This document shows positions 24,001 to 44,300 of a DNA stretch of 59,108 nt, piece by piece. The DNA is from Macrostomum lignano (lineage: Eukaryota). Each line of letters begins with the position of its first letter. Positions within the stretch are counted from its first letter, which is position 1. The DNA is taken from NCBI GenBank assembly GCA_002269645.1, contig NIVC01002625.1, positions 1-59,108 on the forward strand, read 5' to 3'. Made by a program: the position numbers and the translations under genes. Below the pieces are notes generated by a model that made no database searches, was not told the DNA's origin, and was given only the letters and a program-made list of their open reading frames with translations.

Positions 24001-27000
24001 TCGCTCCCGCTCTGGCGCCTTCAACTCGTCTTCTTTGCGCATTGGAGGCAGCTCCTCTTCGATCTCGCTGGCCTCGCGATCTTCTAATACTTTGTCGTCG
24101 AACAGGTCTATCTGGTGTCGCACGTCCTCGTCTACCAGTACTTCTTCGTCGGCCTGAACAATCTCGTCGACCTTGAATTGATCGTCTTCGAATCGGCGCT
24201 CCGCTCTTGCAATGTCGCGGCGAGCGCGCTCATCGCGACGTCGTCGTTCGCGGCGACGGTGGCTCACGAGCTCTTCTGACGCGCGGCTTCTCGCTCTCGC
24301 TCCCGCTCTGGCGCCTTCAACTCGTCTTCTTTGCGCATTGGAGGCAGATCCTCTTCGATCTCGCTGGCCTCGCGATCTTCTAATACTTTGTCGTCGAACA
24401 GGTCTATCTGGTGTCGCACGTCCTCGTCTACCAGTACTTCTTCGTCGGCCTGAACAATCTCGTCGACCTTGAATTGATCGTCTTCGAATCGGCGCTCCGC
24501 TCTTGCAATGTCGCGGCGAGCGCGCTCATCGCGACGTCGTCGTTCGCGGCGACGGTGGCTCACGAGCTCTTCTTGACGCGCGGCTTCTCGCTCTCGCTCC
24601 CGCTCTGGCGCCTTCAACTCGTCTTCTTTGCGCATTGGAGGCAGATCCTCTTCGATCTCGCTGGCCTCGCGATCTTCTAATACTTTGTCGTCGAACAGGT
24701 CTATCTGGTGTCGCACGTCCTCGTCTACCAGTACTTCTTCGTCGGCCTGAACAATCTCGTCGACCTTGAATTGATCGTCTTCGAATCGGCGCTCCGCTCT
24801 TGCAATGTCGCGGCGAGCGCGCTCATCGCGACGTCGTCGTTCGCGGCGACGGTGGCTCACGAGCTCTTCTTGACGCGCGGCTTCTCGCTCTCGCTCCCGC
24901 TCTGGCGCCTTCAACTCGTCTTCTTTGCGCATTGGAGGCAGATCCTCTTCGATCTCGCTGGCCTCGCGATCTTCTAATACTTTGTCGTCGAACAGGTCTA
25001 TCTGGTGTCGCACGTCCTCGTCTACCAGTACTTCTTCGTCGGCCTGAACAATCTCGTCGACCTTGAATTGATCGTCTTCGAATCGGCGCTCCGCTCTTGC
25101 AATGTCGCGGCGAGCGCGCTCATCGCGACGTCGTCGTTCGCGGCGACGGTGGCTCACGAGCTCTTCTGACGCGCGGCTTCTCGCTCTCGCTCCCGCTCTG
25201 GCGCCTTCAACTCGTCTTCTTTGCGCATTGGAGGCAGATCCTCTTCGATCTCGCTGGCCTCGCGATCTTCTAATACTTTGTCGTCGAACAGGTCTATCTG
25301 GTGTCGCACGTCCTCGTCTACCAGTACTTCTTCGTCGGCCTGAACAATCTCGTCGACCTTGAATTGATCGTCTTCGAATCGGCGCTCCGCTCTTGCAATG
25401 TCGCGGCGAGCGCGCTCATCGCGACGTCGTCGTTCGCGGCGACGGTGGCTCACGAGCTCTTCTGACGCGCGGCTTCTCGCTCTCGCTCCCGCTCTGGCGC
25501 CTTCAACTCGTCTTCTTTGCGCATTGGAGGCATCCTCTTCGATCTCGCTGGCCTCGCGATCTTCTAATACTTTGTCGTCGAACAGGTCTATCTGGTGTCG
25601 CACGTCCTCGTCTACCAGTACTTCTTCGTCGGCCTGAACAATCTCGTCGACCTTGAATTGATCGTCTTCGAATCGGCGCTCCGCTCTTGCAATGTCGCGG
25701 CGAGCGCGCTCATCGCGACGTCGTCGTTCGCGGCGACGGTGGCTCACGAGCTCTTCTGACGCGCGGCTTCTCGCTCTCGCTCCCGCTCTGGCGCCTTCAA
25801 CTCGTCTTCTTTGCGCATTGGAGCAGATCCTCTTCGATCTCGCTGGCCTCGCGATCTTCTAATACTTTGTCGTCGAACAGGTCTATCTGGTGTCGCACGT
25901 CCTCGTCTACCAGTACTTCTTCGTCGGCCTGAACAATCTCGTCGACCTTGAATTGATCGTCTTCGAATCGGCGCTCCGCTCTTGCAATGTCGCGGCGAGC
26001 GCGCTCATCGCGACGTCGTCGTTCGCGGCGACGGTGGCTCACGAGCTCTTCTGACGCGCGGCTTCTCGCTCTCGCTCCCGCTCTGGCGCCTTCAACTCGT
26101 CTTCTTTGCGCATTGGAGGCAGCTCCTCTTCGATCTCGCTGGCCTCGCGATCTTCTAATACTTTGTCGTCGAACAGGTCTATCTGGTGTCGCACGTCCTC
26201 GTCTACCAGTACTTCTTCGTCGGCCTGAACAATCTCGTCGACCTTGAATTGATCGTCTTCGAATCGGCGCTCCGCTCTTGCAATGTCGCGGCGAGCGCGC
26301 TCATCGCGACGTCGTCGTTCGCGGCGACGGTGGCTCACGAGCTCTTCTAGACGCGCGGCTTCTCGCTCTCGCTCCCGCTCTGGCGCCTTCAACTCGTCTT
26401 CTTTGCGCATTGGAGGCAGCTCCTCTTCGATCTCGCTGGCCTCGCGATCTTCTAATACTTTGTCGTCGAACAGGTCTATCTGGTGTCGCACGTCCTCGTC
26501 TACCAGTACTTCTTCGTCGGCCTGAACAATCTCGTCGACCTTGAATTGATCGTCTTCGAATCGGCGCTCCGCTCTTGCAATGTCGCGGCGAGCGCGCTCA
26601 TCGCGACGTCGTCGTTCGCGGCGACGGTGGCTCACGAGCTCTTCTGACGCGCGGCTTCTCGCTCTCGCTCCCGCTCTGGCGCCTTCAACTCGTCTTCTTT
26701 GCGCATTGGAGGCAGATCCTCTTCGATCTCGCTGGCCTCGCGATCTTCTAATACTTTGTCGTCGAACAGGTCTATCTGGTGTCGCACGTCCTCGTCTACC
26801 AGTACTTCTTCGTCGGCCTGAACAATCTCGTCGACCTTGAATTGATCGTCTTCGAATCGGCGCTCCGCTCTTGCAATGTCGCGGCGAGCGCGCTCATCGC
26901 GACGTCGTCGTTCGCGGCGACGGTGGCTCACGAGCTCTTCTGACGCGCGGCTTCTCGCTCGCTCGCTCTGGCGCCTTCAACTCGTCTTCTTTGCGCATTG

Positions 27001-30000
27001 GAGGCAGATCCTCTTCGATCTCGCTGGCCTCGCGATCTTCTAATACTTTGTCATCGTCGAACAGGTCTATCTGGTGTCGCACGTCCTCGTCTACCAGTAC
27101 TTCTTCGTCGGCCTGAACAATCTCGTCGACCTTGAATTGATCGTCTTCGAATCGGCGCTCCGCTCTTGCAATGTCGCGGCGAGCGCGCTCATCGCGACGT
27201 CGTCGTTCGCGGCGACGGTGGCTCACGAGCTCTTCTGACGCGCGGCTTCTCGCTCTTCGCTCGCTCTGGCGCCTTCAACTCGTCTTCTTTGCGCATTGGA
27301 GGCAGATCCTCTTCGATCTCGCTGGCCTCGCGATCTTCTAATACTTTGTCGTCGAACAGGTCTATCTGGTGTCGCACGTCCTCGTCTACCAGTACTTCTT
27401 CGTCGGCCTGAACAATCTCGTCGACCTTGAATTGATCGTCTTCGAATCGGCGCTCCGCTCTTGCAATGTCGCGGCGAGCGCGCTCATCGCGACGTCGTCG
27501 TTCGCGGCGACGGTGGCTCACGAGCTCTTCTGACGCGCGGCTTCTCGCTCTCGCTCCCGCTCTGGCGCCTTCAACTCGTCTTCTTTGCGCATTGGAGGCA
27601 GATCCTCTTCGATCTCGCTGGCCTCGCGATCTTCTAATACTTTGTCGTCGAACAGGTCTATCTGGTGTCGCACGTCCTCGTCTACCAGTACTTCTTCGTC
27701 GGCCTGAACAATCTCGTCGACCTTGAATTGATCGTCTTCGAATCGGCGCTCCGCTCTTGCAATGTCGCGGCGAGCGCGCTCATCGCGACGTCGTCGTTCG
27801 CGGCGACGGTGGCTCACGAGCTCTTCTGACGCGCGGCTTCTCGCTCTCGCTCGCTCTGGCGCCTTCAACTCGTCTTCTTTGCGCATTGGAGGCAGATCCT
27901 CTTCGATCTCGCTGGCCTCGCGATCTTCTAATACTTTGTCGTCGAACAGGTCTATCTGGTGTCGCACGTCCTCGTCTACCAGTACTTCTTCGTCGGCCTG
28001 AACAATCTCGTCGACCTTGAATTGATCGTCTTCGAATCGGCGCTCCGCTCTTGCAATGTCGCGGCGAGCGCGCTCATCGCGACGTCGTCGTTCGCGGCGA
28101 CGGTGGCTCACGAGCTCTTCTGACGCGCGGCTTCTCGCTCTCGCTCGCTCTGGCGCCTTCAACTCGTCTTCTTTGCGCATTGGAGGCAGCTCCTCTTCGA
28201 TCTCGCTGGCCTCGCGATCTTCTAATACTTTGTCGTCGAACAGGTCTATCTGGTGTCGCACGTCCTCGTCTACCAGTACTTCTTCGTCGGCCTGAACAAT
28301 CTCGTCGACCTTGAATTGATCGTCTTCGAATCGGCGCTCCGCTCTTGCAATGTCGCGGCGAGCGCGCTCATCGCGACGTCGTCGTTCGCGGCGACGGTGG
28401 CTCACGAGCTCTTCTGACGCGCGGCTTCTCGCTCTCGCTCTGCTCTGGCGCCTTCAACTCGTCTTCTTTGCGCATTGGAGGCAGATCCTCTTCGATCTCG
28501 CTGGCCTCGCGATCTTCTAATACTTTGTCGTCGAACAGGTCTATCTGGTGTCGCACGTCCTCGTCTACCAGTACTTCTTCGTCGGCCTGAACAATCTCGT
28601 CGACCTTGAATTGATCGTCTTCGAATCGGCGCTCCGCTCTTGCAATGTCGCGGCGAGCGCGCTCATCGCGACGTCGTCGTTCGCGGCGACGGTGGCTCAC
28701 GAGCTCTTCTGACGCGCGGCTTCTCGCTTCGCTCGCTCTGGCGCCTTCAACTCGTCTTCTTTGCGCATTGGAGGCAGATCCTCTTCGATCTCGCTGGCCT
28801 CGCGATCTTCTAATACTTTGTCGTCGAACAGGTCTATCTGGTGTCGCACGTCCTCGTCTACCAGTACTTCTTCGTCGGCCTGAACAATCTCGTCGACCTT
28901 GAATTGATCGTCTTCGAATCGGCGCTCCGCTCTTGCAATGTCGCGGCGAGCGCGCTCATCGCGACGTCGTCGTTCGCGGCGACGGTGGCTCACGAGCTCT
29001 TCTGACGCGCGGCTTCTCGCTCTCGCTCGCTCTGGCGCCTTCAACTCGTCTTCTTTGCGCATTGGAGGCAGCTCCTCTTCGATCTCGCTGGCCTCGCGAT
29101 CTTCTAATACTTTGTCGTCGAACAGGTCTATCTGGTGTCGCACGTCCTCGTCTACCAGTACTTCTTCGTCGGCCTGAACAATCTCGTCGACCTTGAATTG
29201 ATCGTCTTCGAATCGGCGCTCCGCTCTTGCAATGTCGCGGCGAGCGCGCTCATCGCGACGTCGTCGTTCGCGGCGACGGTGGCTCACGAGCTCTTCTGGA
29301 CGCGCGGCTTCTCGCTCTTCTGGCGCCTTCAACTCGTCTTCTTTGCGCATTGGAGGCAGTCCTCTTGATCTCGCTGGCCTCGCGATCTTCTAATACTTTG
29401 CGTCGTCGAACAGGTCTATCTGGTGTCGCACGTCCTCGTCTACCAGTACTTCTTCGTCGGCCTGAACAATCTCGTCGACCTTGAATTGATCGTCTTCGAA
29501 TCGGCGCTCCGCTCTTGCAATGTCGCGGCGAGCGCGCTCATCGCGACGTCGTCGTTCGCGGCGACGGTGGCTCACGAGCTCTTCTGGACGCGCGGCTTCT
29601 CGCTCTCGCTCGCTCTGGCGCCTTCAACTCGTCTTCTTTGCGCATTGGAGGCAGATCCTCTTCGATCTCGCTGGCCTCGCGATCTTCTAATACTTTGTCG
29701 TCGAACAGGTCTATCTGGTGTCGCACGTCCTCGTCTACCAGTACTTCTTCGTCGGCCTGAACAATCTCGTCGACCTTGAATTGATCGTCTTCGAATCGGC
29801 GCTCCGCTCTTGCAATGTCGCGGCGAGCGCGCTCATCGCGACGTCGTCGTTCGCGGCGACGGTGGCTCACGAGCTCTTCTGGACGCGCGGCTTCTCGCTC
29901 TTCTGGCGCCTTCAACTCGTCTTCTTTGCGCATTGGAGGCAGTTCCTCTTCGATCTCGCTGGCCTCGCGATCTTCTAATACTTTGTCGTCGAACAGGTCT

Positions 30001-33000
30001 ATCTGGTGTCGCACGTCCTCGTCTACCAGTACTTCTTCGTCGGCCTGAACAATCTCGTCGACCTTGAATTGATCGTCTTCGAATCGGCGCTCCGCTCTTG
30101 CAATGTCGCGGCGAGCGCGCTCATCGCGACGTCGTCGTTCGCGGCGACGGTGGCTCACGAGCTCTTCTGACGCGCGGCTTCTAGCTTCGCTCGCTCTGGC
30201 GCCTTCAACTCGTCTTCTTTGCGCATTGGAGGCAGCTCCTCTTCGATCTCGCTGGCCTCGCGATCTTCTAATACTTTGTCGTCGAACAGGTCTATCTGGT
30301 GTCGCACGTCCTCGTCTACCAGTACTTCTTCGTCGGCCTGAACAATCTCGTCGACCTTGAATTGATCGTCTTCGAATCGGCGCTCCGCTCTTGCAATGTC
30401 GCGGCGAGCGCGCTCATCGCGACGTCGTCGTTCGCGGCGACGGTGGCTCACGAGCTCTTCTGGACGCGCGGCTTCTAGCTTTCGCTCTGGCTCTGGCGCC
30501 TTCAACTCGTCTTCTTTGCGCATTGGAGGCAGATCCTCTTCGATCTCGCTGGCCTCGCGATCTTCTAATACTTTGTCGTCGAACAGGTCTATCTGGTGTC
30601 GCACGTCCTCGTCTACCAGTACTTCTTCGTCGGCCTGAACAATCTCGTCGACCTTGAATTGATCGTCTTCGAATCGGCGCTCCGCTCTTGCAATGTCGCG
30701 GCGAGCGCGCTCATCGCGACGTCGTCGTTCGCGGCGACGGTGGCTCACGAGCTCTTCTGGACGCGCGGCTTCTAGCTTTCGCTCTGGCTCTGGCGCCTTC
30801 AACTCGTCTTCTTTGCGCATTGGAGGCAGATCCTCTTCGATCTCGCTGGCCTCGCGATCTTCTAATACTTTGTCGTCGAACAGGTCTATCTGGTGTCGCA
30901 CGTCCTCGTCTACCAGTACTTCTTCGTCGGCCTGAACAATCTCGTCGACCTTGAATTGATCGTCTTCGAATCGGCGCTCCGCTCTTGCAATGTCGCGGCG
31001 AGCGCGCTCATCGCGACGTCGTCGTTCGCGGCGACGGTGGCTCACGAGCTCTTCTGGAGACGCGGCTTCTCGCTCTTCTGGCGCCTTCAACGTCTTCTTT
31101 GATGAATTAGTTCTTTCGATCTCGCTGGCCTCGCGCTTCTAATACTTTGTCATCGATCAAATCTATTGGTGTCGCACGTCCTCGTCTACCAGTACTTCTT
31201 CGTCGGCCTGAACAATCTCGTCGACCTTGAATTGATCGTCTTCGAATCGGCGCTCCGCTCTTGCAATGTCGCGGCGAGCGCGCTCATCGCGACGTCGTCG
31301 TTCGCGGCGACGGTGGCTCACGAGCTCTTCTGGAGCTCGGCTTCTCGCTCTTTCGCTCTCTTAACTTTTCTTTGATGATTAGTTCTTTCGATCTCGCTGG
31401 CCTCGCGCTTCTAAACTTGTCATCGATCAAATCTATCTGGTGTCGCACGTCCTCGTCTACCAGTACTTCTTCGTCGGCCTGAACAATCTCGTCGACCTTG
31501 AATTGATCGTCTTCGAATCGGCGCTCCGCTCTTGCAATGTCGCGGCGAGCGCGCTCATCGCGACGTCGTCGTTCGCGGCGACGGTGGCTCACGAGCTCTT
31601 CTGGACGCGCGGCTTCTCGCTCTCGCTCGCTCTGGCGCCTTCAACTCGTCTTCTTTGCGCATTGGAGGCAGATCCTCTTCGATCTCGCTGGCCTCGCGAT
31701 CTTCTAATACTTTGTCGTCGAACAGGTCTATCTGGTGTCGCACGTCCTCGTCTACCAGTACTTCTTCGTCGGCCTGAACAATCTCGTCGACCTTGAATTG
31801 ATCGTCTTCGAATCGGCGCTCCGCTCTTGCAATGTCGCGGCGAGCGCGCTCATCGCGACGTCGTCGTTCGCGGCGACGGTGGCTCACGAGCTCTTCTGGA
31901 GACTCGGCTTCTCGCTCTTTCGCCTTCAACTCGTCTTCTTTGATTGAAGTTCTTTCGATCTCGCTGGCCTCGCGCTTCTAATACTTTGTCATCGATCAAC
32001 ATCATTGGTGTCGCACGTCCTCGTCTACCAGTACTTCTTCGTCGGCCTGAACAATCTCGTCGACCTTGAATTGATCGTCTTCGAATCGGCGCTCCGCTCT
32101 TGCAATGTCGCGGCGAGCGCGCTCATCGCGACGTCGTCGTTCGCGGCGACGGTGGCTCACGAGCTCTTCTGGAGACGCGGATTCTCGCTCTTTCGCCTTA
32201 ACTTTTCTTTGATGATAAAAATTAGTTCTTTTCGATCTCGCTGGCCTCGCGCTTCTAAACTTGTCATCGATCAAATCTATCTGGTGTCGCACGTCCTCGT
32301 CTACCAGTACTTCTTCGTCGGCCTGAACAATCTCGTCGACCTTGAATTGATCGTCTTCGAATCGGCGCTCCGCTCTTGCAATGTCGCGGCGAGCGCGCTC
32401 ATCGCGACGTCGTCGTTCGCGGCGACGGTGGCTCACGAGCTCTTCTGGAGACTCGGATTCTCGCTCTTTCGCTCTTCAACTTTTCTTTGATGATTAGTTC
32501 TTTCGATCTCGCTGGCCTCGCGCTTCTACTGTCATCGATCAAATCTATCTGGTGTCGCACGTCCTCGTCTACCAGTACTTCTTCGTCGGCCTGAACAATC
32601 TCGTCGACCTTGAATTGATCGTCTTCGAATCGGCGCTCCGCTCTTGCAATGTCGCGGCGAGCGCGCTCATCGCGACGTCGTCGTTCGCGGCGACGGTGGC
32701 TCACGAGCTCTTCTGGACGCGCGGCTTCTAGCTTTCGCTCTGGCTCTGGCGCCTTCAACTCGTCTTCTTTGCGCATTGGAGGCAGATCCTCTTCGATCTC
32801 GCTGGCCTCGCGATCTTCTAATACTTTGTCGTCGAACAGGTCTATCTGGTGTCGCACGTCCTCGTCTACCAGTACTTCTTCGTCGGCCTGAACAATCTCG
32901 TCGACCTTGAATTGATCGTCTTCGAATCGGCGCTCCGCTCTTGCAATGTCGCGGCGAGCGCGCTCATCGCGACGTCGTCGTTCGCGGCGACGGTGGCTCA

Positions 33001-36000
33001 CGAGCTCTTCTGGAGACTCGGATTCTCGCTCTCGCTCGCTCTTAACTTTTCTTTGATGATAAAAATTAGTTCTTTCGATCTCGCTGGCCTCGCGCGCTTC
33101 TAACTCTGTCGTCAACATCATTGGTGTCGCACGTCCTCGTCTACCAGTACTTCTTCGTCGGCCTGAACAATCTCGTCGACCTTGAATTGATCGTCTTCGA
33201 ATCGGCGCTCCGCTCTTGCAATGTCGCGGCGAGCGCGCTCATCGCGACGTCGTCGTTCGCGGCGACGGTGGCTCACGAGCTCTTCTGGAGACTCGGATCT
33301 CGCTCTTTCGCTCTTAACTTTTCTTTGATGATAAAAATTAGTTCTTTTGATCTCGCTGGCCTCGCGCGCTTCTAACTCTGCATCATCGATCAAATCTAGT
33401 TGGTGTCGCACGTCCTCGTCTACCAGTACTTCTTCGTCGGCCTGAACAATCTCGTCGACCTTGAATTGATCGTCTTCGAATCGGCGCTCCGCTCTTGCAA
33501 TGTCGCGGCGAGCGCGCTCATCGCGACGTCGTCGTTCGCGGCGACGGTGGCTCACGAGCTCTTCTGGACGCGCGGCTTCTAGCTTCGCTCTGGCTCTGGC
33601 GCCTTCAACTCGTCTTCTTTGCGCATTGGAGGCAGCTCCTCTTCGATCTCGCTGGCCTCGCGATCTTCTAATACTTTGTCGTCGAACAGGTCTATCTGGT
33701 GTCGCACGTCCTCGTCTACCAGTACTTCTTCGTCGGCCTGAACAATCTCGTCGACCTTGAATTGATCGTCTTCGAATCGGCGCTCCGCTCTTGCAATGTC
33801 GCGGCGAGCGCGCTCATCGCGACGTCGTCGTTCGCGGCGACGGTGGCTCACGAGCTCTTCTGGACGCGCGGCTTCTAGCTTTCGCTCTGGCTCTGGCGCC
33901 TTCAACTCGTCTTCTTTGCATTGGAGGCAGCTCTTCGATCTCGCTGGCCTCGCGATCTTCTAATACTTTGTCGTCGAACAGGTCTATCTGGTGTCGCACG
34001 TCCTCGTCTACCAGTACTTCTTCGTCGGCCTGAACAATCTCGTCGACCTTGAATTGATCGTCTTCGAATCGGCGCTCCGCTCTTGCAATGTCGCGGCGAG
34101 CGCGCTCATCGCGACGTCGTCGTTCGCGGCGACGGTGGCTCACGAGCTCTTCTGGAGACTCGGAATCTCGCTCTTTCGCTCTTAACTTTTCTTTGATGAT
34201 AAAAATTAGTTCTTTTTGGATCTCGCTGGCCTCGCGCGCTTCTAACTCTGCGTCATCGATCAAATCCAGTTGGTGTCGCACGTCCTCGTCTACCAGTACT
34301 TCTTCGTCGGCCTGAACAATCTCGTCGACCTTGAATTGATCGTCTTCGAATCGGCGCTCCGCTCTTGCAATGTCGCGGCGAGCGCGCTCATCGCGACGTC
34401 GTCGTTCGCGGCGACGGTGGCTCACGAGCTCTTCTGGAGACTCGGATTCTCGCTCTTTCGCTTTTAACTTTTCTTTGATGATAAAAATTAGTTCTTTTTG
34501 GATCTCGCTGGCCTCGCGCGCTTCTAACTCTGCGTCATCGATCAAATCTAGTTGGTGTCGCACGTCCTCGTCTACCAGTACTTCTTCGTCGGCCTGAACA
34601 ATCTCGTCGACCTTGAATTGATCGTCTTCGAATCGGCGCTCCGCTCTTGCAATGTCGCGGCGAGCGCGCTCATCGCGACGTCGTCGTTCGCGGCGACGGT
34701 GGCTCACGAGCTCTTCTGGAGACGCGGATTCTCGCTCTTTCTGGCGCCTTCAACTTCTTCTTTGATTGGAGGCAGTTCTTTCGATCTCGCTGGCCTCGCG
34801 ATCTTCTAATACTTTGCGTCATCGATCAAATCTGGTGTCGCACGTCCTCGTCTACCAGTACTTCTTCGTCGGCCTGAACAATCTCGTCGACCTTGAATTG
34901 ATCGTCTTCGAATCGGCGCTCCGCTCTTGCAATGTCGCGGCGAGCGCGCTCATCGCGACGTCGTCGTTCGCGGCGACGGTGGCTCACGAGCTCTTCTGGA
35001 CGCGCGGATCTCGCTCTTTCGCCTTCAACTTTTCTTTGATTAGTTCTTTCGATCTCGCTGGCCTCGCGATCTTCTAATACTTTGTCGTCGAACAGGTCTA
35101 TCTGGTGTCGCACGTCCTCGTCTACCAGTACTTCTTCGTCGGCCTGAACAATCTCGTCGACCTTGAATTGATCGTCTTCGAATCGGCGCTCCGCTCTTGC
35201 AATGTCGCGGCGAGCGCGCTCATCGCGACGTCGTCGTTCGCGGCGACGGTGGCTCACGAGCTCTTCTGGAGCGCGGCTTCTCGCTCTCGCTCTTCTGGCG
35301 CCTTCAACTCGTCTTCTTTGCGCATTGGAGGCAGTTCTTCGATCTCGCTGGCCTCGCGATCTTCTAATACTTTGTCGTCGAACAGGTCTATCTGGTGTCG
35401 CACGTCCTCGTCTACCAGTACTTCTTCGTCGGCCTGAACAATCTCGTCGACCTTGAATTGATCGTCTTCGAATCGGCGCTCCGCTCTTGCAATGTCGCGG
35501 CGAGCGCGCTCATCGCGACGTCGTCGTTCGCGGCGACGGTGGCTCACGAGCTCTTCTGGAGACTCGGATTCTCGCTCTTTCGCTTTTAACTTTTCTTTGA
35601 TGATAAAAATTAGTTCTTTTTGGATCTCGCTGGCCTCGCGCGCTTCTAACTCTGCGTCATCGATCAAATCCAGTTGGTGTCGCACGTCCTCGTCTACCAG
35701 TACTTCTTCGTCGGCCTGAACAATCTCGTCGACCTTGAATTGATCGTCTTCGAATCGGCGCTCCGCTCTTGCAATGTCGCGGCGAGCGCGCTCATCGCGA
35801 CGTCGTCGTTCGCGGCGACGGTGGCTCACGAGCTCTTCTGGACGCGCGGCTTCTCGCTTTCGCTCTGGCTCTGGCGCCTTCAACTCGTCTTCTTTGCGCA
35901 TTGGAGGCAGCTCCTCTTCGATCTCGCTGGCCTCGCGATCTTCTAATACTTTGTCGTCGAACAGGTCTATCTGGTGTCGCACGTCCTCGTCTACCAGTAC

Positions 36001-37400
36001 TTCTTCGTCGGCCTGAACAATCTCGTCGACCTTGAATTGATCGTCTTCGAATCGGCGCTCCGCTCTTGCAATGTCGCGGCGAGCGCGCTCATCGCGACGT
36101 CGTCGTTCGCGGCGACGGTGGCTCACGAGCTCTTCTGGAGACTCGGATTCTCGCTCTTTCGCTCTTAACTTTTCTTTGATGATAAAAATTAGTTCTTTTT
36201 GGATCTCGCTGGCCTCGCGCGCTTCTAACTCTGTCATCGATCAAATCAGTTGGTGTCGCACGTCCTCGTCTACCAGTACTTCTTCGTCGGCCTGAACAAT
36301 CTCGTCGACCTTGAATTGATCGTCTTCGAATCGGCGCTCCGCTCTTGCAATGTCGCGGCGAGCGCGCTCATCGCGACGTCGTCGTTCGCGGCGACGGTGG
36401 CTCACGAGCTCTTCTGGACGCGCGGCTTCTCGCTTCGCTCGCTCTGGCGCCTTCAACTCGTTTCTTTGATTGATTAGTTCCTCTTCGATCTCGCTGGCCT
36501 CGCGATCTTCTAATACTTTGTCGTCGAACAGGTCTATCTGGTGTCGCACGTCCTCGTCTACCAGTACTTCTTCGTCGGCCTGAACAATCTCGTCGACCTT
36601 GAATTGATCGTCTTCGAATCGGCGCTCCGCTCTTGCAATGTCGCGGCGAGCGCGCTCATCGCGACGTCGTCGTTCGCGGCGACGGTGGCTCACGAGCTCT
36701 TCTGGACGCGCGGCTTCTCTCGCTCTGGCTCTCGCCTTCAACTCGTCTTCTTTGCGCATGGATTAGTTCTCTTCGATCTCGCTGGCCTCGCGCTTCTAAT
36801 ACTTGTCATCGAACATCATCTGGTGTCGCACGTCCTCGTCTACCAGTACTTCTTCGTCGGCCTGAACAATCTCGTCGACCTTGAATTGATCGTCTTCGAA
36901 TCGGCGCTCCGCTCTTGCAATGTCGCGGCGAGCGCGCTCATCGCGACGTCGTCGTTCGCGGCGACGGTGGCTCACGAGCTCTTCTGGACGCGCGGCTTCT
37001 CGCTCTCGCTCGCTCTGGCGCCTTCAACTCGTCTTCTTTGCGCATTGGAGGCAGCTCCTCTTCGATCTCGCTGGCCTCGCGATCTTCTAATACTTTGTCG
37101 TCGAACAGGTCTATCTGGTGTCGCACGTCCTCGTCTACCAGTACTTCTTCGTCGGCCTGAACAATCTCGTCGACCTTGAATTGATCGTCTTCGAATCGGC
37201 GCTCCGCTCTTGCAATGTCGCGGCGAGCGCGCTCATCGCGACGTCGTCGTTCGCGGCGACGGTGGCTCACGAGCTCTTCTGGAGACTCGGATTCTCGCTC
37301 TTTCGCTTTTAACTTTTCTTTGATGATAAAAATTAGTTCTTTTTGGATCTCGCTGGCCTCTGCGCACTCTCTCAGTACTCCAGTTCGTGTCGCACGTCCT
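1..37400 (-). CDS. Putative giant repetitive E/R/D-rich protein region (99-aa repeat), partial at both ends; frameshifts probably consensus errors
   Basis: The minus frame reads VRHQIDLFDDKVLEDREASEIEEDLPPMRKEDELKAPEREREREAARQEELVSHRRRERRRRDERARRDIARAERRFEDDQFKVDEIVQADEEVLVDED with no stop in the unit. Clean unit lengths (297/291/282) are all multiples of 3, and variants differ by synonymous or conservative changes in this frame. The ORF-track M starts are internal GTG codons, not real starts. Confidence 0.72.
2666..10028. repeat. Sub-region containing 291-bp units (in-frame loss of Leu-Val)
   Basis: gtctacttcttcgtcgg replaces gtctaccagtacttcttcgtcgg at ~2886, 3177, 4644, 6124 and 9957. Unit spacing is 291 (2666-2957-3248; 4425-4716; 5904-6195; 9737-10028). 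The protein reads EEVDEDV instead of EEVLVDEDV. Confidence 0.85.
20272..24267 (-). CDS. Longest uninterrupted array-1 segment (1331 codons, ~13 repeats); a fragment, not a separate gene
   Basis: ORF track. Bounded by a 1-bp deletion at ~20345 (ccgccttgca) and a 1-bp deletion at ~24277 (tcttctgacg). Similar fragments: 17303-20263, 12654-14921, 8178-10241, 4156-6705. Confidence 0.6.
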   Translation of the reverse strand: MSHRRRERRRRDERARRDIARAERRFEDDQFKVDEIVQADEEVLVDEDVRHQIDLFDDKVLEDREASEIEEELPPMRKEDELKAPEREREREAARQEELVSHRRRERRRRDERARRDIARAERRFEDDQFKVDEIVQADEEVLVDEDVRHQIDLFDDKVLEDREASEIEEDLPPMRKEDELKAPEREREREAARQEELVSHRRRERRRRDERARRDIARAERRFEDDQFKVDEIVQADEEVLVDEDVRHQIDLFDDKVLEDREASEIEEELPPMRKEDELKAPEREREREAARQEELVSHRRRERRRRDERARRDIARAERRFEDDQFKVDEIVQADEEVLVDEDVRHQIDLFDDKVLEDREASEIEEDLPPMRKEDELKAPEREREREAARQEELVSHRRRERRRRDERARRDIARAERRFEDDQFKVDEIVQADEEVLVDEDVRHQIDLFDDKVLEDREASEIEEDLPPMRKEDELKAPEREREREAARQEELVSHRRRERRRRDERARRDIARAERRFEDDQFKVDEIVQADEEVLVDEDVRHQIDLFDDKVLEDREASEIEEDLPPMRKEDELKAPEREREREAARQEELVSHRRRERRRRDERARRDIARAERRFEDDQFKVDEIVQADEEVLVDEDVRHQIDLFDDKVLEDREASEIEEDLPPMRKEDELKAPEREREREAARQEELVSHRRRERRRRDERARRDIARAERRFEDDQFKVDEIVQADEEVLVDEDVRHQIDLFDDKVLEDREASEIEEDLPPMRKEDELKAPEREREREAARQEELVSHRRRERRRRDERARRDIARAERRFEDDQFKVDEIVQADEEVLVDEDVRHQIDLFDDKVLEDREASEIEEDLPPMRKEDELKAPEREREREAARQEELVSHRRRERRRRDERARRDIARAERRFEDDQFKVDEIVQADEEVLVDEDVRHQIDLFDDKVLEDREASEIEEDLPPMRKEDELKAPEREREREAARQEELVSHRRRERRRRDERARRDIARAERRFEDDQFKVDEIVQADEEVLVDEDVRHQIDLFDDKVLEDREASEIEEDLPPMRKEDELKAPEREREREAARQEELVSHRRRERRRRDERARRDIARAERRFEDDQFKVDEIVQADEEVLVDEDVRHQIDLFDDKVLEDREASEIEEDLPPMRKEDELKAPEREREREAARQEELVSHRRRERRRRDERARRDIARAERRFEDDQFKVDEIVQADEEVLVDEDVRHQIDLFDDKVLEDREASEIEEDLPPMRKEDELKAPEREREREAARQEELVSHRRRERRRRDERARRDIARRSADSKTINSRSTRLFRPTKKYW
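30455..35880. repeat. Units of a second 297-bp allele (A-prime: KAPEPERKLEAARPEE)
   Basis: ggacgcgcggcttctagctttcgctctggctctggcgcc occurs cleanly at ~30.46, 30.76, 32.71 and 33.86 kb, and nearly so at ~33.57 and 35.84 kb. In frame in ORFs 30155-31090 and 32399-33121. Confidence 0.8.
33000..37360. repeat. Units of a 282-bp (94-aa) variant B interspersed with 297-bp units
   Basis: Spacing 34270 to 34552 is 282 bp. The variable part reads QLDLIDDAELEAREASEIQKELIFIIKEKLKAKERESESPEE. ORFs 33814-34707 and 35254-36237 stay open across A-type/B boundaries. Confidence 0.85.
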
Positions 37401-38345
37401 CGTCTACCAGTACTTCTTCGTCGGCCTTGAATCTCGTCTTCTGCGCTCTTCTTGAATCGGCGCCGCTCTTCGAGTCGAGCGCGCTCTTCGCGACGTCGTC
37501 GCTTCGGCGCACGCTCGCTCTACCAGTCGCTTCTTTCGGCCTCGATCTCTCGCCTGAACTTCTCTTCTCGCGCGCTCTCTTGCATCGGCACGCTCTCTCG
37601 TCGTCTTTGCGATCTTCGACGCTCTTTCAAGCTCTCACGTCGTCTCGGTTCTCTTCTCGATCTTCGTGGCCTCGAAAATCTCGCGCAGATCTTCTCTGCA
37701 TCTGGTGTCACGTCTTCGAATCGGCGAGCTCTCTTCGCGACGCTCTTGCGCTCGAGCTCTCACGCTCGCTCTACGGTGGCTCGCTCTTCTCGGCTTCTTA
37801 TTCGCTCTTTCAACTCAATCTTCTTCTTCTCGCGGGCGCATCTGGTGCGTCTCGTCGTCGGCCTGAACAATCTCGTCGACCTTGAATTGATCGTCTTCGA
37901 ATCGGCGCTCCGCTCTTGCGCGGCGAGCGCGCTCACGCGACTCGTCGTTCGGCGACGGTGGCTCGAGCTCTTCTGGGATCGGATTCTTCTTCGCTTTTAA
38001 CTCGTCTTTTCTCGCTCTCGCGCGCTTCTAACTCTCTCATCCAGTTGGTGTCGCACGTCCTCGTCTGGGCCTGAACAATCTCTCGCTGAATTGATCTCTT
38101 CGAATCGCGCTCCGCTCTTGCAAGCGGCGAGCGCGCTCATCGCCGTCGTCCGGCGACGGTGGTCGAGCTCTTCTGCGGCTTCTTCTTCGCTTTCTAACTC
38201 GAAAAGTCTTTTCTCCTCTCGCCGCCAACTCTTCTCCTGCCAGCTTACAGCTCTCTCGAATCGCCTCTTTGACACTCTTCGTCGAATCTTGTCTTCGTCT
38301 CTCAAACAGTCGCGTAAAGCCAAGTCGTCTCTTTTCTTTTATCTC
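37360..38345. other. Scrambled junction between the arrays (probable consensus/polishing artefact over an unresolved linker)
   Basis: Built of short shuffled pieces of the array-1 unit (e.g. gtcgcacgtcctcgtctaccagtacttcttcgtcggcc, gcctgaacaatctcgtcgaccttgaattgatcg). It grades from ~38200 into degraded array-2 pieces (ttctcctctcgccgcca). No stable period. Confidence 0.65.
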
Positions 38346-41300
38346 AACAGCCTCGAAGAAGTGCTTCTTCTCCTCTCGCCGCCAGAGCTCTTCCTCCCTA
38401 GCCAGTGCTGGTGGTACACGCTCCTCCTCGAAGTGGGCCGCCTCCTCCTCCCAGCTGACGCACTCTTCCGCGTACACGTACATCTTGTCGAAGGCTTCGT
38501 GCTCCTGCAACAAGCCTCGCTCATCAGGCACTGGCAGGTCGGCTTCTTCTGCGGATGGCTTCTTCTTCGCCTCTTCCTCAACGGCCTCGAAGAAGTGCTT
38601 CTTCTCCTCTCGCCGCCAGAGCTCTTCCTCCCTAGCCAGTGCTGGTGGTACACGCTCCTCCTCGAAGTGGGCCGCCTCCTCCTCCCAGCTGACGCACTCT
38701 TCCGCGTACACGTACATCTTGTCGAAGGCTTCGTGCTCCTGCAACAAGCCTCGCTCATCAGGCACTGGCAGGTCGGCTTCTTCTGCGGATGGCTTCTTCT
38801 TCGCCTCTTCCTCAACGGCCTCGAAGAAGTGCTTCTTCTCCTCTCGCCGCCAGAGCTCTTCCTCCCTAGCCAGTGCTGGTGGTACACGCTCCTCCTCGAA
38901 GTGGGCCGCCTCCTCCTCCCAGCTGACGCACTCTTCCGCGTACACGTACATCTTGTCGAAGGCTTCGTGCTCCTGCAACAAGCCTCGCTCATCAGGCACT
39001 GGCAGGTCGGCTTCTTCTGCGGATGGCTTCTTCTTCGCCTCTTCCTCAACGGCCTCGAAGAAGTGCTTCTTCTCCTCTCGCCGCCAGAGCTCTTCCTCCC
39101 TAGCCAGTGCTGGTGGTACACGCTCCTCCTCGAAGTGGGCCGCCTCCTCCTCCCAGCTGACGCACTCTTCCGCGTACACGTACATCTTGTCGAAGGCTTC
39201 GTGCTCCTGCAACAAGCCTCGCTCATCAGGCACTGGCAGGTCGGCTTCTTCTGCGGATGGCTTCTTCTTCGCCTCTTCCTCAACGGCCTCGAAGAAGTGC
39301 TTCTTCTCCTCTCGCCGCCAGAGCTCTTCCTCCCTAGCCAGTGCTGGTGGTACACGCTCCTCCTCGAAGTGGGCCGCCTCCTCCTCCCAGCTGACGCACT
39401 CTTCCGCGTACACGTACATCTTGTCGAAGGCTTCGTGCTCCTGCAACAAGCCTCGCTCATCAGGCACTGGCAGGTCGGCTTCTTCTGCGGATGGCTTCTT
39501 CTTCGCCTCTTCCTCAACGGCCTCGAAGAAGTGCTTCTTCTCCTCTCGCCGCCAGAGCTCTTCCTCCCTAGCCAGTGCTGGTGGTACACGCTCCTCCTCG
39601 AAGTGGGCCGCCTCCTCCTCCCAGCTGACGCACTCTTCCGCGTACACGTACATCTTGTCGAAGGCTTCGTGCTCCTGCAACAAGCCTCGCTCATCAGGCA
39701 CTGGCAGGTCGGCTTCTTCTGCGGATGGCTTCTTCTTCGCCTCTTCCTCAACGGCCTCGAAGAAGTGCTTCTTCTCCTCTCGCCGCCAGAGCTCTTCCTC
39801 CCTAGCCAGTGCTGGTGGTACACGCTCCTCCTCGAAGTGGGCCGCCTCCTCCTCCCAGCTGACGCACTCTTCCGCGTACACGTACATCTTGTCGAAGGCT
39901 TCGTGCTCCTGCAACAAGCCTCGCTCATCAGGCACTGGCAGGTCGGCTTCTTCTGCGGATGGCTTCTTCTTCGCCTCTTCCTCAACGGCCTCGAAGAAGT
40001 GCTTCTTCTCCTCTCGCCGCCAGAGCTCTTCCTCCCTAGCCAGTGCTGGTGGTACACGCTCCTCCTCGAAGTGGGCCGCCTCCTCCTCCCAGCTGACGCA
40101 CTCTTCCGCGTACACGTACATCTTGTCGAAGGCTTCGTGCTCCTGCAACAAGCCTCGCTCATCAGGCACTGGCAGGTCGGCTTCTTCTGCGGATGGCTTC
40201 TTCTTCGCCTCTTCCTCAACGGCCTCGAAGAAGTGCTTCTTCTCCTCTCGCCGCCAGAGCTCTTCCTCCCTAGCCAGTGCTGGTGGTACACGCTCCTCCT
40301 CGAAGTGGGCCGCCTCCTCCTCCCAGCTGACGCACTCTTCCGCGTACACGTACATCTTGTCGAAGGCTTCGTGCTCCTGCAACAAGCCTCGCTCATCAGG
40401 CACTGGCAGGTCGGCTTCTTCTGCGGATGGCTTCTTCTTCGCCTCTTCCTCAACGGCCTCGAAGAAGTGCTTCTTCTCCTCTCGCCGCCAGAGCTCTTCC
40501 TCCCTAGCCAGTGCTGGTGGTACACGCTCCTCCTCGAAGTGGGCCGCCTCCTCCTCCCAGCTGACGCACTCTTCCGCGTACACGTACATCTTGTCGAAGG
40601 CTTCGTGCTCCTGCAACAAGCCTCGCTCATCAGGCACTGGCAGGTCGGCTTCTTCTGCGGATGGCTTCTTCTTCGCCTCTTCCTCAACGGCCTCGAAGAA
40701 GTGCTTCTTCTCCTCTCGCCGCCAGAGCTCTTCCTCCCTAGCCAGTGCTGGTGGTACACGCTCCTCCTCGAAGTGGGCCGCCTCCTCCTCCCAGCTGACG
40801 CACTCTTCCGCGTACACGTACATCTTGTCGAAGGCTTCGTGCTCCTGCAACAAGCCTCGCTCATCAGGCACTGGCAGGTCGGCTTCTTCTGCGGATGGCT
40901 TCTTCTTCGCCTCTTCCTCAACGGCCTCGAAGAAGTGCTTCTTCTCCTCTCGCCGCCAGAGCTCTTCCTCCCTAGCCAGTGCTGGTGGTACACGCTCCTC
41001 CTCGAAGTGGGCCGCCTCCTCCTCCCAGCTGACGCACTCTTCCGCGTACACGTACATCTTGTCGAAGGCTTCGTGCTCCTGCAACAAGCCTCGCTCATCA
41101 GGCACTGGCAGGTCGGCTTCTTCTGCGGATGGCTTCTTCTTCGCCTCTTCCTCAACGGCCTCGAAGAAGTGCTTCTTCTCCTCTCGCCGCCAGAGCTCTT
41201 CCTCCCTAGCCAGTGCTGGTGGTACACGCTCCTCCTCGAAGTGGGCCGCCTCCTCCTCCCAGCTGACGCACTCTTCCGCGTACACGTACATCTTGTCGAA

Positions 41301-44300
41301 GGCTTCGTGCTCCTGCAACAAGCCTCGCTCATCAGGCACTGGCAGGTCGGCTTCTTCTGCGGATGGCTTCTTCTTCGCCTCTTCCTCAACGGCCTCGAAG
41401 AAGTGCTTCTTCTCCTCTCGCCGCCAGAGCTCTTCCTCCCTAGCCAGTGCTGGTGGTACACGCTCCTCCTCGAAGTGGGCCGCCTCCTCCTCCCAGCTGA
41501 CGCACTCTTCCGCGTACACGTACATCTTGTCGAAGGCTTCGTGCTCCTGCAACAAGCCTCGCTCATCAGGCACTGGCAGGTCGGCTTCTTCTGCGGATGG
41601 CTTCTTCTTCGCCTCTTCCTCAACGGCCTCGAAGAAGTGCTTCTTCTCCTCTCGCCGCCAGAGCTCTTCCTCCCTAGCCAGTGCTGGTGGTACACGCTCC
41701 TCCTCGAAGTGGGCCGCCTCCTCCTCCCAGCTGACGCACTCTTCCGCGTACACGTACATCTTGTCGAAGGCTTCGTGCTCCTGCAACAAGCCTCGCTCAT
41801 CAGGCACTGGCAGGTCGGCTTCTTCTGCGGATGGCTTCTTCTTCGCCTCTTCCTCAACGGCCTCGAAGAAGTGCTTCTTCTCCTCTCGCCGCCAGAGCTC
41901 TTCCTCCCTAGCCAGTGCTGGTGGTACACGCTCCTCCTCGAAGTGGGCCGCCTCCTCCTCCCAGCTGACGCACTCTTCCGCGTACACGTACATCTTGTCG
42001 AAGGCTTCGTGCTCCTGCAACAAGCCTCGCTCATCAGGCACTGGCAGGTCGGCTTCTTCTGCGGATGGCTTCTTCTTCGCCTCTTCCTCAACGGCCTCGA
42101 AGAAGTGCTTCTTCTCCTCTCGCCGCCAGAGCTCTTCCTCCCTAGCCAGTGCTGGTGGTACACGCTCCTCCTCGAAGTGGGCCGCCTCCTCCTCCCAGCT
42201 GACGCACTCTTCCGCGTACACGTACATCTTGTCGAAGGCTTCGTGCTCCTGCAACAAGCCTCGCTCATCAGGCACTGGCAGGTCGGCTTCTTCTGCGGAT
42301 GGCTTCTTCTTCGCCTCTTCCTCAACGGCCTCGAAGAAGTGCTTCTTCTCCTCTCGCCGCCAGAGCTCTTCCTCCCTAGCCAGTGCTGGTGGTACACGCT
42401 CCTCCTCGAAGTGGGCCGCCTCCTCCTCCCAGCTGACGCACTCTTCCGCGTACACGTACATCTTGTCGAAGGCTTCGTGCTCCTGCAACAAGCCTCGCTC
42501 ATCAGGCACTGGCAGGTCGGCTTCTTCTGCGGATGGCTTCTTCTTCGCCTCTTCCTCAACGGCCTCGAAGAAGTGCTTCTTCTCCTCTCGCCGCCAGAGC
42601 TCTTCCTCCCTAGCCAGTGCTGGTGGTACACGCTCCTCCTCGAAGTGGGCCGCCTCCTCCTCCCAGCTGACGCACTCTTCCGCGTACACGTACATCTTGT
42701 CGAAGGCTTCGTGCTCCTGCAACAAGCCTCGCTCATCAGGCACTGGCAGGTCGGCTTCTTCTGCGGATGGCTTCTTCTTCGCCTCTTCCTCAACGGCCTC
42801 GAAGAAGTGCTTCTTCTCCTCTCGCCGCCAGAGCTCTTCCTCCCTAGCCAGTGCTGGTGGTACACGCTCCTCCTCGAAGTGGGCCGCCTCCTCCTCCCAG
42901 CTGACGCACTCTTCCGCGTACACGTACATCTTGTCGAAGGCTTCGTGCTCCTGCAACAAGCCTCGCTCATCAGGCACTGGCAGGTCGGCTTCTTCTGCGG
43001 ATGGCTTCTTCTTCGCCTCTTCCTCAACGGCCTCGAAGAAGTGCTTCTTCTCCTCTCGCCGCCAGAGCTCTTCCTCCCTAGCCAGTGCTGGTGGTACACG
43101 CTCCTCCTCGAAGTGGGCCGCCTCCTCCTCCCAGCTGACGCACTCTTCCGCGTACACGTACATCTTGTCGAAGGCTTCGTGCTCCTGCAACAAGCCTCGC
43201 TCATCAGGCACTGGCAGGTCGGCTTCTTCTGCGGATGGCTTCTTCTTCGCCTCTTCCTCAACGGCCTCGAAGAAGTGCTTCTTCTCCTCTCGCCGCCAGA
43301 GCTCTTCCTCCCTAGCCAGTGCTGGTGGTACACGCTCCTCCTCGAAGTGGGCCGCCTCCTCCTCCCAGCTGACGCACTCTTCCGCGTACACGTACATCTT
43401 GTCGAAGGCTTCGTGCTCCTGCAACAAGCCTCGCTCATCAGGCACTGGCAGGTCGGCTTCTTCTGCGGATGGCTTCTTCTTCGCCTCTTCCTCAACGGCC
43501 TCGAAGAAGTGCTTCTTCTCCTCTCGCCGCCAGAGCTCTTCCTCCCTAGCCAGTGCTGGTGGTACACGCTCCTCCTCGAAGTGGGCCGCCTCCTCCTCCC
43601 AGCTGACGCACTCTTCCGCGTACACGTACATCTTGTCGAAGGCTTCGTGCTCCTGCAACAAGCCTCGCTCATCAGGCACTGGCAGGTCGGCTTCTTCTGC
43701 GGATGGCTTCTTCTTCGCCTCTTCCTCAACGGCCTCGAAGAAGTGCTTCTTCTCCTCTCGCCGCCAGAGCTCTTCCTCCCTAGCCAGTGCTGGTGGTACA
43801 CGCTCCTCCTCGAAGTGGGCCGCCTCCTCCTCCCAGCTGACGCACTCTTCCGCGTACACGTACATCTTGTCGAAGGCTTCGTGCTCCTGCAACAAGCCTC
43901 GCTCATCAGGCACTGGCAGGTCGGCTTCTTCTGCGGATGGCTTCTTCTTCGCCTCTTCCTCAACGGCCTCGAAGAAGTGCTTCTTCTCCTCTCGCCGCCA
44001 GAGCTCTTCCTCCCTAGCCAGTGCTGGTGGTACACGCTCCTCCTCGAAGTGGGCCGCCTCCTCCTCCCAGCTGACGCACTCTTCCGCGTACACGTACATC
44101 TTGTCGAAGGCTTCGTGCTCCTGCAACAAGCCTCGCTCATCAGGCACTGGCAGGTCGGCTTCTTCTGCGGATGGCTTCTTCTTCGCCTCTTCCTCAACGG
44201 CCTCGAAGAAGTGCTTCTTCTCCTCTCGCCGCCAGAGCTCTTCCTCCCTAGCCAGTGCTGGTGGTACACGCTCCTCCTCGAAGTGGGCCGCCTCCTCCTC

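Follow-up and report, generated by a model that had tools for sequence, protein, structure and literature searches.

Does a contig made up of tandem repeats encode a protein, and can the differences between its repeat variants tell us so? This question is raised by contig NIVC01002625.1 of the Macrostomum lignano Mlig_3_7 assembly (GCA_002269645.1), which was analysed as a whole and is hereafter called the window (59,108 nt). This assembly was built from PacBio reads with Canu 1.4, followed by Pilon polishing (PMC5730564). The window contains only two tandem arrays (Table 1), both on the minus strand, with units of 297 bp (99 codons) in array 1 and 234 bp (78 codons) in array 2. Both periods are divisible by 3, and all public gene calls on the contig are also on the minus strand. 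The consensus unit of array 1, named A, reads EELVSHRRRERRRRDERARRDIARAERRFEDDQFKVDEIVQADEEVLVDEDVRHQIDLFDDKVLEDREASEIEEDLPPMRKEDELKAPEREREREAARQ in its minus frame and is represented by 49 identical 297-bp copies, while array 2 reads EERVPPALAREEELWRREEKKHFFEAVEEEAKKKPSAEEADLPVPDERGLLQEHEAFDKMYVYAEECVSWEEEAAHFE in its E-rich frame; protein similarity between the two arrays is not detectable (E = 8.2). In the junction between them, the last array-2 unit gives way to unique sequence of about 45 codons, and no open frame across the junction was found. In a putative product read from the minus strand, array 2 with its 78-residue units would be N-terminal and array 1 C-terminal. The explanation that we favour, with moderate confidence, is a species-restricted array coding for a giant, charged and helical repeat protein, which evolves in concert and retains older units of a second type, named B, at its edge.

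Table 1. Positions of the arrays, the junction and the B-type units in the window.
Feature	Positions	Strand	Description
Array 1	4..37301	minus	about 125 head-to-tail 297-bp units (99 codons); TRF period 297
Mixed A/B edge zone	31055..37411	minus	putative N-terminal end of array 1
Near-clean B unit	33286..33564	minus	279 bp; out of frame across the ELIFII patch owing to small deletions
Clean B unit	34153..34434	minus	282 bp; K>R and E>D variant, KEKLRAKERDSESP
Clean B unit	34435..34716	minus	282 bp; CTA Leu codon
Clean B unit	35557..35838	minus	282 bp (94 codons); CTG Leu codon; ends ...VRHQLDLIDDAELEAREASEIQKELIFIIKEKLKAKERESESP
Near-clean B unit	36136..36414	minus	279 bp; 1 + 2 bases missing within the QLDLIDDAE codons; frame-broken as assembled
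Inter-array junction	37302..38342	minus	4-5 shortened, degenerate array-1 units with many frameshifts and stops
Array 2	38343..59108	minus	about 89 units of 234 bp (78 codons), 70 identical

With regard to the reading frame, minus frame 0, which is rich in E and R, is the sole stop-free frame of the six in both A and B, the others containing one to six stops; in array 2, four of the six frames are open, two of them in sense orientation. An open frame taken alone was rejected as weak coding evidence after shuffling, which gave a probability of 0.57-0.64 of finding one with such a unit composition. Base composition has a marked period of 3: in A and array 2, first codon positions are about 50% G and second positions about 45% A, and the base-by-codon-phase chi-square yielded p = 5e-10 for A, p = 2e-8 for array 2 and, for the part specific to B, p = 0.03. 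Both arrays show this bias on one and the same strand, where its phase matches that of the open frame. It is stop codons and codon-phase composition that set the frame, not dN/dS, and array 1 looks protein-coding, its translation being predicted from the sequence. The first-pass annotation had taken array 1 as coding rather than satellite DNA; the frame that it proposed holds on stops and periodicity, but the dN/dS on which it relied as proof does not carry this conclusion (0.42-0.45, and not specific to that frame).

The contig could instead be a non-coding satellite, in which a coding-like, GA-rich piece was amplified and never translated as an array, its frame and period being inherited or accidental and the divergence between A and B neutral. 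The 59-kb contig is indeed composed of two arrays and nothing else, the 49 and 70 identical copies point to a very recent amplification, one open frame in six is expected by chance, stops are abundant in the junction, and simple or tandem repeats make up 15% of the M. lignano genome (PMC5730564). Furthermore, 48 of 122 units (about 40%) are frame-broken as assembled, including recurrent off-frame variants, the longest ORF has 1331 codons and none runs uninterrupted across the assembled array, and the length variants, all considered together, show no enrichment for multiples of 3 (23 of 66, P = 0.44). However, these two failures may be technical, as the indel pattern suggests consensus error. 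As expected of technical errors, indels are concentrated at variant sites and at the ends of the contig: deletions in A-type units recur where clean variants differ, at unit positions 269-270 (GG/CA) and 296 (A/C/T), and the 70 identical units of array 2 are devoid of any indel, scattered 1-bp deletions being present at the contig end only. A 1-bp deletion at unit position 72, which recurs seven or eight times with no alternative base visible, is not readily explained as a mixture artefact. The off-frame variants also include a unit of 290 bp. A satellite is expected to be a long homogeneous array lacking coding features; array and homogeneity are present here, but so are coding features, namely an open frame and, on one strand in both arrays, strong codon-phase composition. 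We consider a satellite unlikely, though by no means negligible.

The B units bear on this question, since their frame stays open despite 28% divergence from A and a net deletion of 15 nt (P = 0.019 for the joint occurrence of a stop-free B and a number of synonymous codons no lower than that observed), which speaks against a satellite. As first described, A reads QIDLFDD and B QLDLIDD in the minus frame, six of the seven quoted codons differing by four synonymous and two conservative changes (I>L and F>I). The minus strand carries 112 copies of the A motif CAGATAGACCTGTTCGACGAC, one of the B motif CAACTAGATTTGATCGATGAC (34554) and two of the CTG version of the latter (35676 and 34272). Differences among B copies were likewise confirmed as CTA/CTG, AAA/AGA (K/R) and GAA/GAT (E/D), the K/R and CTA states recurring in several units, and so was the net change of -15 (282 bp in clean B, 297 bp in A), which is robust, while its split into 3 + 12 hinges on alignment scoring. 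The AT-rich patch encoding ELIFII is unlike the rest of the window, as had been noticed: over the 59 kb, 25-mers with at most 7 G+C are confined to 31092-37328. Its exact 25-nt form is present five times (34195, 34477, 35599, 36178 and 37322), and its 15-nt core eight times between 32211 and 37322. This patch was also considered as a small intron and rejected, there being no usable GT...AG pair and the patch being in frame and open. B-specific 31-mers cross, for instance, CTAATTTTTATCATCAAAGAAAAG, and the tryptic peptides predicted from the units are HQIDLFDDK, FEDDQFK, HQLDLIDDAELEAR and ELIFIIK.

Every B unit, A/B hybrid unit and AT-rich patch of the window lies in the edge zone of array 1. 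The presence of B within the span first assigned to it (33000-37360) was upheld, but its lower limit was not, B-type sequence extending down to about 31.1 kb. Among 22 units of this zone, two measure 297 bp, 11 have another length divisible by 3 and nine do not. B is represented by three clean units, two near-clean ones and about nine in which A and B alternate on a fine scale and deletions have lengths not divisible by 3, hybrids lying for example at 34717-34996, 32446-32713 and 32170-32445; the variable halves of the first and last junction units are also B-like. The unit at 35557..35838 is in frame with the A units on both sides, and uninterrupted ORFs of 327 and 297 codons run across B-A-B-A and B-B-A unit junctions, respectively. 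A and B differ solely in their last ~133/118 nt. Of the 126 nt aligned in this variable part, 35 are mismatched, compared with none of the 162 in the constant part (Fisher p = 1e-14), and all 26 edge units have the same first 164 nt. With respect to the A and B templates, departures in these 26 units amount to 194 of 3562 cells in the variable part and 0 of 4264 in the constant part. Hybrids display up to eight or more switches between A and B states within 130 nt, and their deletions are located where A and B differ.

Such a pattern raises the question of whether B is an assembly artefact, that is, a mis-join or a noisy-read consensus absent from the genome. B is embedded in the noisiest zone of array 1, next to a garbled junction, in an assembly of PacBio CLR reads by Canu, and polishing short reads cannot be uniquely placed in the array. 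Yet the three clean units are in frame and the two near-clean ones come close, A and B are separated by substitutions, including coherent codon changes, rather than by indels, the CTA and K>R sub-variants recur in several units, and the B motif is also found in gene models from the ML2 assembly, made by another assembler. That B should be absent from the genome is, in our opinion, very improbable. Because the PacBio reads are common to ML2 and Mlig_3_7 (PMC5730564), the agreement of the two assemblies is not independent at the read level. Most hybrid and off-frame units, on the other hand, are probably consensus errors arising where PacBio reads of non-identical units were piled up.

A stronger claim had been made for the substitutions, namely that they reveal clear purifying selection on A and B and by themselves prove the frame and its coding status. 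In addition to the run of QIDLFDD/QLDLIDD changes, this claim is consistent with the synonymous or conservative nature of the differences within B, and with dN/dS in the proposed frame (Nei-Gojobori, whole segment differing between A and B), which is 0.42-0.45 overall and 0.27 over the ungapped first 90 nt; Fisher's test on the Nei-Gojobori counts gave P = 0.025 (one-sided, uncorrected). It had been expected that dN/dS would be well below 1 solely in the E/R-rich minus frame, but other frames gave similar values: over the whole segment, 0.52-0.60 in sense frame +1 and 0.47-0.57 in antisense frame 1, values down to 0.5 and 0.36, respectively, also being obtained. When the 35 substitutions were randomly re-placed, at least eight synonymous-only codons were obtained with P = 0.086 in the proposed frame, and the nine synonymous codons of antisense frame 1 with P = 0.08, so that over the full alignment the substitution pattern is equally compatible with another frame. 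The seven-codon stretch put forward as the signature is the best-looking part of the alignment, and its four synonymous codons reach P = 0.06 once corrected for window selection. Mismatches are distributed 13:9:13 over codon positions. The 16 replacements between A and B, among them P>I, P>F, R>I, V>E and D>A, are radical on average (mean BLOSUM62 -0.6), PPMR in A becoming IFII in B; substitutions among clean A sub-variants are all replacements, which, like the lack of frame specificity of dN/dS, also agrees with a satellite. In the half shared by A and B, the 164 identical nt point to homogenisation instead of selection. The excess of synonymous changes is marginal and lacks frame specificity, constraint on the variable half is weak, and the signature is too weak to prove coding. 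That clear purifying selection should by itself establish the frame and coding status is very improbable.

These observations can be accommodated by concerted evolution of a repeat protein gene. Array 1 would be protein-coding now, or would have been so very recently, and the region under study would be its N-terminal edge. Through unequal crossing-over and gene conversion, the interior would have become uniform for the A unit, and the first 164 nt of every unit, B included, would have been homogenised as well. B would then represent an earlier state of the last ~40 codons that has diverged and survives in the outermost ~20 units only, which could explain why old substitutions (dS ~0.7) and a net five-codon deletion are found in one half of the unit and no difference in the other. 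Both concerted evolution as the cause and B as the older state are what we infer from this distribution. Concerted evolution with diverged edge units is a general model for coding tandem repeats, for example VNTR genes of the mucin or involucrin type. The array resembles these in its identical interior units, its variant or degenerate units at the edges, and a mosaic identity within units, as from conversion tracts; it differs from them in the length of its unit (99 codons), in its extreme copy number and homogeneity, and in that its translation is putative.

Such an array would encode a repeat protein of high charge and almost wholly alpha-helical structure. AlphaFold2, used in single-sequence mode, predicts long helices, with a low-confidence Pro linker in A (residues 76-98) where B has a continuous helix; for array 2, it predicts helices and Pro linkers. 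In these models the variable half would be linker-like: a disordered linker containing Pro in A, and in B an uninterrupted helix that bears a hydrophobic LIFII cluster. For the E/R-rich stretch PEREREREAARQEELVSHRRRERRRRDERARRDIARAERRFEDD, the prediction is one long helix (pLDDT >90), and no compact fold is proposed (pTM 0.29). Charged repeat proteins include those with ER/K-rich single alpha-helices and trichohyalin-like proteins, which PEREREREAARQEELVSHRRRERRRRDERARRDIARAERRFEDD may resemble through its predicted helix. The differences are that there is no sequence homology with them, and that half of the present unit is acidic with regular hydrophobic residues and so not of the ER/K type.

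Searches for array-1 homologues outside M. lignano in a 5.8-billion word-indexed set and a 1.84-billion set searched in full with HMMER returned none, in line with what a satellite would show; the sole other match, P0005, is a weak low-complexity one (E = 6e-6). Searches for homologues of the array-2 protein gave no matches, and for both arrays there was neither a Pfam match above cut-off nor a sequence match in the PDB. Our literature search on Macrostomum satellites or repeats of this kind found nothing relevant. Within the species, A units are present in the UniProt entries A0A1I8HPW6, A0A1I8F6H6 and A0A1I8F5B1, with up to 91% identity over 20 stretches. These three ML2 models, in which the B motif or a terminal unit resembling B is found as well, are ab initio predictions, uncharacterised, fragmentary and frameshift-ridden, and come from a different assembly of the same reads. 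In A0A1I8HPW6, the last unit before unique sequence is B-like (VRHQLDLLDEAG), and a second model carries VRHQLDLIDDAE. The continuation of the array into unique sequence in an ML2 gene model argues against a satellite.

A precedent from the same species is the adhesive protein Mlig-ap2, which has 14,794 aa and carries in its centre 21 repeats of 255 aa followed by 25 of 221 aa; it has no homologues outside its lineage, and its expression and function have been demonstrated (PMC6410801). Both loci have two different long-period arrays back to back. Here, however, units of 78 and 99 aa are repeated about 89 and 125 times, the composition is E/R/D-rich and Cys-poor, the arrays are without vWD, TIL, LDL or TSP-1 domains, and their product is predicted from sequence. 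No sequence match to Mlig-ap2 was found. The hallmarks of Mlig-ap1 and Mlig-ap2 are periods of 255/221 aa or K/R-rich regions, together with vWD, TIL, EGF and TSP-1 domains; identity with either was rejected owing to the periods of 99/78 aa and to the lack of any Pfam domain.

A bolder proposal starts from A0A1I8HPW6, in which the repeats are followed by WIF, transmembrane and tyrosine-kinase regions (RYK-like) that are absent from the window. Both arrays might be exons of one translated giant protein with such a C-terminal module, the B units with their LIFII helix forming a functionally distinct proximal segment. The part encoded here would have at least 19,700 residues, a lower bound as both arrays run off the contig ends. 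This proposal appears doubtful in the extreme, but, if true, it would describe a Wnt co-receptor-type kinase bearing an enormous charged helical repeat region.

As it stands, the locus is an ordinary, uncharacterised, lineage-restricted repeat array. It illustrates that a short synonymous run between repeat variants is an unreliable test of coding, and that an array of non-identical units can look pseudogenised through consensus errors of long reads. If translated, the product would be among the largest and most homogeneous animal repeat proteins, in an organism used as a model of regeneration.

According to Tandem Repeats Finder, two tandem arrays fill nearly all of the 59,108-base window, which corresponds to the complete contig NIVC01002625.1 (see the table), namely, array 1 with a 99-codon period and array 2 with a 78-codon period. 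The assembly (GCA_002269645.1) was built with Canu 1.4 from PacBio reads SRX1063031 and polished by Pilon with Illumina and RNA-seq reads, and its authors attribute 15% of the M. lignano genome to simple and tandem repeats (PMC5730564). When the minus strand was divided at a conserved 20-mer, array 1 yielded 122 single units, 49 of which are identical copies of one 297-bp sequence (A), translated in its sole stop-free frame as EELVSHRRRERRRRDERARRDIARAERRFEDDQFKVDEIVQADEEVLVDEDVRHQIDLFDDKVLEDREASEIEEDLPPMRKEDELKAPEREREREAARQ. Array 2 includes 70 identical 234-bp units. The window has a G+C content of 58-60%, which seems high by comparison with the roughly 46% of the M. lignano genome. Tandem Repeats Finder breaks array 1 in two at 11130-11225 (minus strand), where a unit is cut to ~242 bp with its segment order disturbed, CAATTCAAGGTCGA preceding TTCGAAGACGAT; an assembly join seems a likelier cause than biology. 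No reading frame spans the junction of the two arrays, which may represent an intron, a degenerate spacer or a join with poor support.

Repeat arrays and selected units of contig NIVC01002625.1
Feature	Position	Strand	Description
Array 1	4-37301	minus	period 297; Tandem Repeats Finder
Array 2	38343-59108	minus	period 234; Tandem Repeats Finder
Junction of arrays	37302-38342		array-1 units (4-5), shortened and frameshifted; ~45 unique codons following the last array-2 unit
Clean B unit	35557-35838	minus	282 bp
Clean B unit	34435-34716	minus	282 bp
Clean B unit	34153-34434	minus	282 bp
Position-72 deletion, example unit starts	20415, 17446, 15962, 15666, 15073		1-bp deletion in A units

The first-pass annotation described a diverged unit, B, and its observations on this unit were confirmed. 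The quoted A, B and AT-rich strings are all found on the minus strand of the window, with 112 occurrences of the A heptapeptide motif (QIDLFDD), three of the B motif (QLDLIDD; one with CTA, two with CTG), five of the AT-rich 25-mer and eight of its 15-nt core. The seven quoted codons do hold four synonymous changes together with I>L and F>I, and clean B units, which end in ...VRHQLDLIDDAELEAREASEIQKELIFIIKEKL(K/R)AKER(E/D)SESP, show the announced net change of 15 bp (282 versus 297 bp). The AT-rich patch is indeed unlike the rest of the window, AT-rich 25-mers being confined to 31092-37328. The B zone lies in array 1 as proposed, at its 5' (N-terminal) edge, but spans ~31.1 to 37.4 kb and thus begins below the lower bound initially assigned to it.

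The A/B substitutions had been read as a signature of purifying selection that fixes the reading frame, a reading that our analysis does not bear out. A and B were aligned without an assumed frame; the first 90 nt were ungapped under all scoring schemes, while the split of the 15-nt deficit of B into 3 + 12 varied with the scoring. Over the whole variable segment, Nei-Gojobori dN/dS was 0.42-0.45 in the proposed frame, with close values in sense +1 (0.52-0.60) and antisense frame 1 (0.47-0.57); two further frames exceeded 1. A/B mismatches were distributed over the three codon positions as 13:9:13. When the same 35 substitutions were re-placed on bases of the same kind, the 8 synonymous-only codons observed in the proposed frame compared with 4.7 ± 2.0 expected (P = 0.086), and antisense frame 1 scored alike (9 codons, P = 0.08). 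In this randomisation, the substitutions created no new stop with a probability of 0.18 (joint P with the synonymous codons = 0.019). Four synonymous codons within a window of seven arise somewhere in the segment with P = 0.06. A Fisher test on the Nei-Gojobori counts gave a one-sided P = 0.025, uncorrected for six frames. The 16 A/B replacements have a mean BLOSUM62 score of -0.6 and include P>I, P>F, R>I, V>E, D>A and K>A, and all substitutions among clean A sub-variants are replacements (D75E, R90P, E92K, R93L, Q99P/L). Because of these results, the selection signal is at most suggestive and is not specific to one frame.

The distribution of the differences along the unit points to another process. 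Among the 26 units of the N-terminal edge, including B and A/B hybrids, the first 164 nt are the same in A and B (0 departures in 4264 cells), and all differences fall within the last ~133 (A) or 118 (B) nt. In this variable part, mismatches affect 35 of 126 aligned positions, apart from the net 15-nt length difference, versus 0 of 162 in the constant part (Fisher p = 1e-14). A synonymous divergence of ~0.7 adjoins a half-unit with none, a contrast that points to homogenisation through unequal exchange or conversion and not to selection. A diverged edge and a uniform interior are what concerted evolution typically produces in tandem arrays. As B-like states sit at both array edges (the other one being represented by the last unit of gene model A0A1I8HPW6) and in the degenerate junction units, the data are consistent with B being older and A having been amplified.

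What, then, supports the reading frame? Minus frame 0, the proposed E/R-rich frame, has no stop in A or B, and each of the other five has 1-6 per unit; this is weak evidence for coding, since at least one open frame also occurs in 57% of dinucleotide-shuffled A units. Stronger evidence comes from codon-phase composition, where G makes up 51% of position 1 and A 45% of position 2. The chi-square test gave p = 5e-10 for A, 2e-8 for array 2 and 0.03 for the part specific to B; in both arrays, the signal is in phase with the open frame and lies on one common strand. Further, ORFs continue across B-A-B-A and B-B-A unit junctions, and all public gene calls on NIVC01002625.1 are on the minus strand. 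The frame initially proposed for array 1 is therefore right, and the array is likely protein-coding, although the selection argument cannot carry either point. In array 2, four of six frames are open for >5500 codons, and public gene calls read it in two sense frames, one E-rich and one R/S/T/C-rich; the typical G-at-position-1, A-at-position-2 composition is limited to the former.

As assembled, 48 of the 122 array-1 units do not keep the frame cleanly, the longest ORF has 1331 codons, and length variants show no enrichment in multiples of three (23 of 66, P = 0.44), which, taken at face value, argues against an intact gene. The breaks, nearly all deletions, recur in A-type units where clean variants differ, at positions 269-270 (GG vs CA) and 296 (A, C or T), and near a clean variant that lacks 6 bp, where deletions of 2, 3+1+1 and 4 bp form intermediates; in B, one coincides with the A/T difference of the E/D site. 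Hybrid units alternate between A and B states, within 130 nt up to eight times or more, and their gaps sit at diagnostic columns; 16 kb of identical array-2 units contain no indel. As deletions track variant sites, hybrids gap at diagnostic columns and identical units are spared, the pattern looks technical, of the sort that a long-read consensus yields from piled reads of non-identical units. The contig ends (55000-59108 and 1-11000) are noisier than the interior, as expected from low coverage there: array-2 units at the contig end measure 225-226 bp and are peppered with 1-bp deletions, and at 1-11000, array-1 units of 289-292 bp group around the 6-bp deletion variant. One exception resists the pile-up explanation, namely, a 1-bp deletion at unit position 72 (CAAG to CAG) in 7-8 otherwise perfect A units, where no alternative base was seen; this is a systematic error of the consensus or else a genuine frameshift variant that has spread through the array.

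Matches to array 1 are limited to M. lignano proteins, namely, three UniProt gene models from ML2, an older assembly made from the same PacBio reads with a different assembler. A0A1I8F5B1 carries the B motif (VDEDVRHQLDLIDDAE), and A0A1I8HPW6 (3445 aa) comprises ~20 A units, the last degenerate B-like unit VRHQLDLLDEAG, ~150 unique residues, and then a WIF domain, a transmembrane helix and a tyrosine-kinase domain, an RYK-like arrangement. The unique region and RYK-like module occupy residues ~1874-2600, with apparent junk beyond the kinase. This join represents either a true fusion or merged neighbouring genes; the assignment of the contig to the worm, as opposed to its diatom food or a contaminant, rests on the connection that this model makes between the repeats and an RYK-like kinase of metazoan type. 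Array 2 has no relatives at all, neither array matches Pfam or PDB, and the two are unrelated to each other. The feature is a long-period repeat array restricted to one lineage, with diverged units at its edge, and lies in a noisy contig assembled from long reads.

Single-sequence AlphaFold2 predicts long helices for an A+B pair (mean pLDDT 80, pTM 0.29), and helices with Pro linkers between them for three array-2 units (pTM 0.22). Residues 76-98 of A (DLPPMRKEDELKAPEPERKREAARP) appear as a low-confidence Pro-containing linker, and the predicted helix of B runs unbroken through ELIFIIKEKLKAKE. If translated, the product would be an extended, highly charged helical repeat protein in which B may swap a flexible linker for a helix with a hydrophobic cluster. 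The closest documented analogue, from the same species, is the adhesive protein Mlig-ap2 (14,794 aa), with 21 repeats of 255 aa followed by 25 of 221 aa and no outside homologues (PMC6410801). The arrays are not Mlig-ap2 itself, since periods, composition and domains all differ. Unless a giant translated protein is revealed by reads, transcripts or peptides, the array has little general interest. Mlig-ap2 shows that such repeat architectures do get translated in M. lignano.
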